Program-made: the position numbers and the translations under genes
Source of the DNA: Hamiltosporidium tvaerminnensis FI-OER-3-3
Taxonomy: Eukaryota; Fungi; Microsporidia
DNA length: 64,000 nucleotides
Assembly: GCA_022605425.2 (NCBI GenBank)
Contig: CM061253.1
Span: 310,001 to 374,000 of the forward strand
Direction of reading: 5' to 3'
Notes under the pieces: generated by a model
What the model saw: only the letters and a program-made list of their open reading frames with translations
Database searches by the model: none
What the model was told of the DNA's origin: nothing
Shown: positions 42,824-43,181 of the stretch, in pieces
Layout: the number at the start of each line of letters is the position of its first letter
Numbering within the stretch: position 1 is the stretch's first letter

Positions 42824-43181
42824 TTAGTAAAGCTTGAACTTACTAAGAAAAGTTAAAAGGACTTTATTATCATCTTTTTTGTATGGTTTTAATGCCACGC
42901 AGGTTTTTTCGTTGTCTTCTGTCCAACAGTAGAATAAAAAATTGTTTTTGGTAAAAAAAATTATGGATTCTTCTATGTCTTTGATGTTACACTAATTAGG
43001 AATAAAATACCTTTAAAATAACTTTTGTCATGTTATTTAAGTCGGAAATATAGAGTTGGTTATCTAAATCGTTTTTATACGTTATTATAGCGGATACTGA
43101 AGCATGACATGCTTGGGCTATAAGTGCACCTTTGGAAAAGTTTTTAAGATCATTTCTAAGCAAAATATATTGTGTTATCAT
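42824..43181 (-). CDS. PTRHD1: PTH2-family peptidyl-tRNA hydrolase, PTRHD1-like, 112 aa, two exons (43181-43011 and 42991-42824)
   Basis: Spliced product MITQYILLRNDLKNFSKGALIAQACHASVSAIITYKNDLDNQLYISDLNNMTKVILK|CNIKDIEESIIFFTKNNFLFYCWTEDNEKTCVALKPYKKDDNKVLLTFLSKFKLY*. It has the PTRHD1-type motifs QY..LR.DL, GAL.AQACHA, M.KV.L, W.E...TC.AL.PY and K(F/L).L. Confidence 0.93.
42992..43010 (-). other. 19-nt spliceosomal intron GTATTTTATTCCTAATTAG (phase 0)
   Basis: GTA donor and a branch-like CTAAT abutting the TAG acceptor. It contains a stop in the exon-1 frame (TAA) and a stop in the exon-2 frame (TAG). Removing it gives a complete, apparently gap-free family member. Confidence 0.85.

Follow-up and report, generated by a model that had tools for sequence, protein, structure and literature searches.

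The window analysed here is a stretch of 64,000 nucleotides (nt) from Hamiltosporidium tvaerminnensis, a microsporidian parasite of Daphnia, to which all coordinates refer unless another contig is named. On its minus strand lies a gene of the PTH2 family whose coding sequence is divided by a 19-nt segment, GTATTTTATTCCTAATTAG, at 43010-42992 (C8/scaffold_14:352,992-353,010 in the assembly of Angst et al. 2023), a candidate spliceosomal intron. The open reading frame (ORF) listed for the locus (42996..43181, minus strand) encodes only 61 amino acids (aa). Exon 1 (43011..43181) starts with the ATG at 43181, ends with an AAG (K57) closing the string KVILK, and encodes in its 57 codons the N-terminal half of a PTH2-fold protein. 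Exon 2 (42824..42991), which lies in the +1 frame, holds 55 codons (42991-42827) and a TAA stop at 42826-42824 and encodes the C-terminal half; it contains no Met codon and therefore cannot be translated independently. Read on the minus strand, the junction is TTA AAG, GTATTTTATTCCTAATTAG, TGT AAC, so that the segment sits in phase 0 and its removal leaves a single frame of 57+55 = 112 codons. The segment itself (42992..43010) begins with GT and ends with AG, as U2-type GT-AG introns do. Its donor, GTATTT (43005..43010), is preceded by the exonic AAG and differs at +4 and +5 from GTAAGT, the consensus of this genome. The branch-site motif CCTAAT (42995..43000) directly abuts the acceptor TAG (42992..42994), and the presumed branch A, assigned by analogy with UACUAAC, falls at 42996, that is, at intron position +15. 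A first-pass annotation of the window had described this arrangement, namely a 61-aa ORF that becomes a complete 112-aa frame on removal of 19 nt and a branch motif fused to the acceptor, and both points held at 43181-42824. Downstream of the stop codon, an AATAAA (42803..42808, minus strand) 16-21 nt away is a candidate poly(A) signal, albeit a weak one because this motif is common in DNA of 25% GC; in this species, Angst et al. (2023, PMC10542269, Table S3) reported A.UAAA some 20 nt ahead of 3' ends.

A split frame of this kind could also arise if an error of sequencing or of assembly, or else a simple frameshift, had interrupted an otherwise continuous gene, and AT-rich homopolymer runs are indeed prone to error in the long-read data behind the assembly. 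The exon-1 frame, however, meets a TAA at segment positions 13-15, while the exon-2 frame is closed by a TAG at positions 17-19, so no single indel can join the two, as the first-pass annotation had argued. Moreover, Illumina reads had been used to polish the H. tvaerminnensis assembly (21.64 Mb, 17 contigs, 26.6% GC; Angst et al. 2023, PMC10542269), and further assemblies and samples agreed with it. The H. magnivora locus, from an independent assembly, carries the same 19 nt with one substitution, at 43000, which changes CCTAAT into TCTAAT; the latter is the commoner variant of the branch motif, and the YCTAAT pattern is thus kept. An older H. tvaerminnensis assembly contains the identical 61-aa ORF and with it nucleotides 1-15 of the segment. 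Contigs of samples X1 and X2, taken as DNA-like on the grounds that genes and spacers were alike fully covered, crossed the site without any indel or substitution within the segment, at word depths of about 265 and 460. The 19-nt length is therefore no assembly slip. Together with the clean 23-nt intron found at the same site in a relative (see below), these data effectively refute the error explanation, to which we assign next to no probability. As a separate matter, one X1 contig joins 42544 to 43232 and drops the 687 nt in between, including the PTH2-like gene and a neighbouring U5 small nuclear RNA (snRNA) gene; the shorter side of this joint spans 22 letters, and the joint is probably a low-complexity or repeat artefact.

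The two halves of the predicted protein were searched exon by exon. Exon 1 matched the Pfam PTH2 family (PF01981) over positions 2-55 of 115, with an E value of 9.5e-9 and 35.9 bits, above the cut-off of 23, and in a genome-wide profile scan its locus scored 34.7 bits. Exon 2 on its own gave no match in Pfam (E up to 10) or among PDB sequences, and is too diverged for Pfam to detect unaided. It did align with the C-terminal halves of two relatives. The first is L003, a Logan contig (SRR23946965) bearing the closest relative of the gene outside the genus, whose own exon 2 matches PF01981 positions 64-113 (E 1.4e-4); BLASTP of exon 2 against it gave E 5e-11 and 35% identity. The second is the Pancytospora epiphaga protein P0004, residues 71-123 of which matched exon 2 with E 1e-8 and 38% identity. 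Through these alignments, exon 2 appears to contain the second half of the PTH2 domain (profile positions of about 56-115). Both full-length Pancytospora proteins used for comparison, P0004 (123 aa) and P0005 (115 aa), carry PF01981, and an Atlas look-alike search with P0004 returned PTH2 clusters only. The attribution to the PTH2 family was thus sustained for both halves; the narrower PTRHD1-like label of the first-pass annotation is one that we presume from the pattern of the human sequence. PTH2 chains in the PDB matched weakly (E 0.01-1). The genome encodes a second, canonical PTH2 gene at C8:200405-200725 (95 bits), and the split gene is therefore a divergent paralogue. These last two observations speak, indirectly, for a protein nearer to PTRHD1 than to PTH2 of the PTRH2/Bit1 type. 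In the word-based protein searches, which returned 3-5 relatives, the 112-aa Hamiltosporidium protein was not found among candidates of 61-192 aa, in a collection that may lack the 2023 annotation.

The relatives also informed about the position of the interruption. In L003, whose exon 1 is 63% identical to that of the window, the ORF stops just past the same LK, and the junction reads CTC AAG, GTAAGTGGATAACCTAATTTCAG, ATA AAA. The element in between, at L003:3226-3248, is a canonical 23-nt GTAAGT...TTTCAG intron in phase 0, located at the same codon boundary, and 58 codons follow it, matching PF01981 positions 64-113. Both Pancytospora genes are continuous and intronless. Exon 1 is also 63% identical to P0004, and in the exon-by-exon alignment the end of exon 1 and the start of exon 2 occupy adjacent columns of P0004 and P0005, leaving the junction ungapped; the opening three residues of exon 2, although misplaced by MAFFT, fit without a gap. 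Judged from these alignments, removal of the 19 nt would restore a conserved frame colinear with the homologues. Among alternative splice sites, a GTTATT donor 12 nt upstream would keep the frame but delete the conserved VILK, and downstream AGs used as acceptor would break the frame; both were rejected on colinearity.

Identity between the window and L003 fell from 63% in the N-terminal half to 35% in the C-terminal half, and that between the window and P0004 from 63% to 38%. The same drop separates P0004 from L003 (60% and 37%). Since the C-terminal half is the weaker one in all three pairs, lower conservation there is a property of the family, and exon 2 shows no acceleration relative to lineages in which its translation is certain. 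This conservation argues, along with 55 codons that stay open at a GC content of 25%, that exon 2 is expressed, which would require removal of the 19 nt.

The candidate was then compared with the introns already known from this genome. Angst et al. (2023, G3, PMC10542269) reported 98 predicted and 17 Iso-Seq-confirmed introns with a mean length of 28 nt; in their Table S2, 13 of the 17 confirmed introns measure 20-25 nt and the shortest 20 nt, although no minimum is given in the text. All 17 Table S2 sequences were fetched, and 15 of them, ranging from 20 to 68 nt, were judged bona fide. Fourteen of these 15 start with GTAAGT and the remaining one with GTAAGC. A CTAAT or CTAAC branch motif is present in 13 of the 15 (the exceptions being a 23-nt sc2 intron with TTAAT and a 32-nt sc15 intron with no such motif), and in the introns bearing it the terminal TAG, TTAG or TTAAG comes no more than a few bases later; the overall pattern of Table S2 is GTAAGT..YCTAAT-T(0-2)-(T/A)AG. 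The 3' part of the candidate, CCTAATTAG, fits the confirmed introns of this genome, with a branch motif of their own type, CCTAAT, at the usual distance from the AG. It shares its last 11 nt, ending TTCCTAATTAG, with a confirmed 21-nt intron, GTAAGTAATTTTCCTAATTAG; in a second confirmed 21-nt intron, GTAAGTCATTTCTAATTTAAG, the branch A likewise occupies position +15; and a confirmed 20-nt intron, GTAAGTATATTTCTAATTAG, shows the same branch-to-AG spacing and the same CTAATTAG ending, which terminates 10 of the 17 published introns. As each of its spacings is matched by a confirmed intron, the 19-nt element combines the two shortest working spacings and exceeds neither. The candidate differs from the confirmed set in length (19 nt compared with at least 20 nt) and in its donor (GTATTT instead of GTAAGT), and resembles it in the GT donor and in a YCTAAT motif that merges with the acceptor, which in the confirmed set is (T)TAG or TTAAG.

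Some mechanism has to join the two frames, and one could imagine that it acts during translation, through ribosomes bypassing the 19 nt or another recoding device. Beyond that bare need, and with no search made for take-off or landing codon pairs or a hairpin, nothing specific points to such a mechanism, whereas the segment carries the splice-site and branch-site motifs of this very genome, at the site of an orthologous canonical intron, and we regard recoding as extremely improbable.

Some of the published introns deserve a comment of their own. The two confirmed entries of scaffold_11 that we did not count as bona fide (C16:223210-223247 and C16:410886-410946) lack a branch motif and lie within repeats. 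The former, 38 nt long, corresponds to exactly two units of a 19-nt tandem repeat, and the latter, 61 nt, has the same direct repeat of about 12 nt at both ends; in appearance the pair are closer to template switching or variation in repeat length than to splicing. The confirmed 68-nt intron at C10:481659-481726 contains, between its splice signals, the series TGATGA, CTGA, TGATGA and TCTGA, in the manner of an intron-borne box C/D small nucleolar RNA.

Scans of the whole genome (21,638,905 bases, 17 contigs) revealed further elements of similar size; for the hits with a relaxed donor, flanks were fetched and frames tested. The pattern GTAAGT-N(0-14)-CTAATTAG gave 18 hits in the genome against 2 in the control. 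Hits of this type measuring 20-25 nt occurred in clear coding context, for instance in NEDD8-like, cytochrome-b5-like and PPPDE-like genes. Those of 14, 14, 17 and 18 nt were without coding context and about as numerous as in the control, and were not counted as introns. The same decision was taken for GTATTT-type hits of 16 (four repeat copies), 17, 18 and 19 nt, none of which had coding context. The 16-nt word, GTATTTTGCTAATTAG, recurs with identical flanks at C1:38400-38415, C5:67044-67059, C5:1128299-1128314 and C6:942851-942866; its copies form a dispersed repeat in non-coding context and are intron-like by motif only. No 19-nt intron combining a GTAAGT donor with the CTAATTAG acceptor was found in the genome scan.

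The relaxed-donor scans yielded four further 19-nt elements, all built as GTAATT, 4 nt, TCTAAT and TAG, ending TCTAATTAG, with long open frames on both sides. One (C12:2089311-2089329) splits a PP2C gene between QGYRK and EMED, and the downstream exon matches PF00481 from position 15 onwards (E 2e-32). Two lie in VPS9-domain paralogues, at C2:518394-518412 and C2:569551-569569; the second has an Iso-Seq-confirmed 21-nt intron 160 nt upstream of it and 217 open codons after it. The fourth (C2:1680240-1680258) belongs to a member of a multicopy membrane-protein family; at the corresponding position in paralogues, intron lengths are 20, 21 and 23 nt. Four 20-nt elements with off-consensus donors were also found. 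A BolA-like gene (C1:1311882-1311901) has the same GTATTT donor as the candidate, and the exon downstream corresponds to PF01722 positions 45-76; a DUF167 gene (C2:526280-526299) has GTAAGA; and two paralogues of the membrane-protein family (C15:983032-983051 and C17:129931-129950) have GTAGGT. For the BolA and DUF167 genes, Pfam matches of the exon that follows the element are confined to the C-terminal portion of the domain, which would be the case if the element split that domain. The downstream exons of these genes are long and intact, so off-consensus donors appear to be tolerated.

These findings also bear on a broader proposal of the first-pass annotation. A population of ultra-short introns in this organism is real, judging from the genome scans and from Table S2, but it had largely been published for this very assembly (PMC10542269). 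A length of 19 nt is no new regime: it extends the published 20-nt minimum by a single base, and it is shared by the four additional 19-nt elements.

Considering the anatomy of the gene, the homology of both its halves, the conserved position, the match to the consensus and the recurrence of the same 19 nt in other isolates, we conclude that the segment at 43010-42992 is very probably a genuine 19-nt, phase-0, U2-type GT-AG spliceosomal intron of a PTH2-family gene. Its removal from the RNA, the efficiency of that step and the snRNA pairings described below are inferred. No run catalogued as RNA contained the stretch, and two RNA runs, X8 and X20, both labelled as host, had zero reads on 42300-43700; the parasite was not shown to be present in them, and they argue neither for nor against splicing.

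Several observations nevertheless weigh against this conclusion. The donor is not the GTAAGT of the genome: GTATTT lacks the A at +4 and the G at +5 carried by 14 of the 15 bona fide introns, and a weak or dead donor is conceivable. The candidate is absent from the 17 confirmed introns, and splicing efficiency in H. tvaerminnensis ranges from 7.5 to 92% (PMC10542269). Between H. tvaerminnensis and H. magnivora, exon 1 shows 0 differences whereas exon 2 shows 4 in 168 nt, all of them non-synonymous (I/L, F/I, V/L and D/N). These 4 changes are conservative and their rate is close to the regional neutral value of 2.3%; the contrast of 0 against 4 hints at a weaker constraint on exon 2, with too few differences to decide, in a region where divergence per 200-nt bin ranges from 0 to 11 differences. 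Among the polymorphisms of X1 and X2, with codon effects read by hand, two in exon 1 (43040 and 43071) were synonymous, and exon 2 showed the same V/L change.

These points can be assembled into the main rival explanation, a decaying gene in which the donor was lost in Hamiltosporidium, the intron is now retained or removed only in traces, the product is the 61-aa stub, and exon 2 is a recently released relic. Such decay would account for the off-consensus GTATTT, for an exon 2 that differs from that of H. magnivora by amino acid replacements alone, at a nearly neutral rate and next to an unchanged exon 1, and for public annotations that end at the intron. It is harder to reconcile with the 55 codons of exon 2 still being open in such GC-poor DNA and with exon 2 being as well conserved against two other species as the C-terminal halves of those species are against each other. 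Exon 1 is evidently constrained, and there is no plausible function that half a PTH2 fold could serve. Donors of the GTATTT and GTAATT kinds precede long intact downstream exons elsewhere in the genome, in the BolA, PP2C and VPS9 genes, and the branch and acceptor motif is intact and kept in H. magnivora. On balance we consider decay unlikely, and a functional intron remains our preferred interpretation.

If the intron is functional, its recognition could proceed as follows. U1 would pair with AAG|GUA, that is, with exon positions -2 and -1 and intron positions +1 to +3, and additionally with +6. U2 would pair with CCUAAU, bulging the A at +15, and the AG four bases past the branch A would serve as acceptor. 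Excision would join K57 to C58 and give the 112-aa protein colinear with its intronless homologues, while an unspliced messenger would yield the 61-aa stub only. The intron would be old, given the orthologous intron at the same site in the relative L003; in the Hamiltosporidium lineage it would have shrunk to 19 nt and lost the GTAAGT donor. The candidate would then be one of a small class of 19-nt introns in this genome that are laid out as GTAWTT + 4 nt + YCTAAT + TAG.

A GTAAGT donor was present in none of the 4 independent 19-nt genes, in contrast to most introns of at least 20 nt. It is possible, though in our view rather doubtful, that Hamiltosporidium has a discrete class of 19-nt introns of fixed 6+4+6+3 layout (GTAWTT, 4 nt, YCTAAT, TAG) which represents the physical lower limit of a reduced spliceosome and always has a weakened donor without G at +5. 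Were this so, either recognition of the donor and of the branch site would interfere with each other at 19 nt, or recognition would rely largely on the exonic AAG and on the block formed by branch site and acceptor. Such introns would be the shortest known in the fungal lineage and would offer a tractable model of minimal intron recognition.

Introns below 20 nt are known from unrelated lineages. Those of chlorarachniophyte nucleomorphs measure 18-21 nt and those of heterotrich ciliates 15-16 nt; there are hundreds to thousands of them, and their lengths vary very little. Like the candidate, they place the U1 and U2 sites too close together for the usual intron definition. The comparison with them in the first-pass annotation is fair as an analogy and goes no further, since in Hamiltosporidium there are about 100 introns genome-wide and 19 nt is the lower tail of their lengths. 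Introns of Encephalitozoon cuniculi measure about 23 nt or more; most are 5'-biased and lie in ribosomal-protein genes. E. cuniculi and other microsporidia share with the case described here the miniature size of the introns, the setting in a reduced parasite of the fungal lineage and a branch point close to the 3' splice site, and their introns are often inefficiently spliced; the candidate differs from those of E. cuniculi in being 19 nt long, in the middle of its gene and in a non-ribosomal gene. Short, poorly spliced introns of E. cuniculi and its relatives are referred to in PMC6349667, which cites Lee et al. (2010) and Grisdale et al. (2013), PMC2483917 treats short branch-to-3' distances in intron-poor eukaryotes, and the shortest intron of Vairimorpha necatrix is 24 nt (PMC10759460).

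In literature text searches, no previous report of a 19-nt or 'shortest' microsporidian intron was found. If the element is spliced, 19 nt would be the shortest intron that we have found reported for a microsporidian, compared with minima of 20 nt in this species, 24 nt in V. necatrix and about 23 nt in E. cuniculi, and a degenerate donor would be tolerated at that length. Introns of 20-25 nt were already published for the species, and the candidate is therefore an incremental step and no new phenomenon. It extends what was known modestly: the published minimum is undercut by one base, a small group of 19-nt elements sharing GTAWTT donors is added, and a set of concrete mis-annotations is brought to light. 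The real oddity of the candidate, on which the first-pass annotation did not remark, is its GTATTT donor in a genome where GTAAGT is near-invariant.

The mis-annotations illustrate a practical consequence. At least 2 public models end at the intron, one of 61 aa from the older H. tvaerminnensis assembly and one of 55 aa from H. magnivora. Both lack exon 2, in line with the statement of the first-pass annotation that gene finders miss such introns. Over 84% of its length, the 61-aa ORF is 100% identical to the H. magnivora protein. The H. magnivora model (L004:3001-4982, PITI01000013.1) has an invented upstream exon (beginning MHP), set off by an 'intron' of about 1.8 kb, and terminates within the 19-nt element; H. 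magnivora conserves the simple ATG start of the gene in the window. Likewise, the PP2C, VPS9, BolA-like, DUF167 and membrane-family genes need 19-20-nt introns with off-consensus donors to be read correctly, and such introns will be missed by aligners that score short gaps as deletions and by gene finders that impose a minimum intron length.

Next to the PTH2-like gene, and convergent with it, a U5 snRNA gene was identified on the plus strand at 42555-42665 (Rfam RF00020; score 41.7 bits, gathering threshold 40), 158 nt from the stop codon of the former. In the Rfam alignment its loop I reads GUCUUUUCCU, where the consensus has GCCUUUUACU. The window (1-64000) is otherwise gene-poor, without tRNAs and with none of its 10 other ORFs of at least 90 aa matching a Pfam family, so that the first-pass description of the PTH2-like gene as the only intact protein gene is fair. 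A ciliate-type alternative genetic code was considered for so ORF-poor a stretch and dropped, as the U5 snRNA and the identical Hamiltosporidium proteins identify a microsporidian with gene-poor stretches. Within the window, positions 10001-12000 have a GC content of 14% and a strong AT skew.

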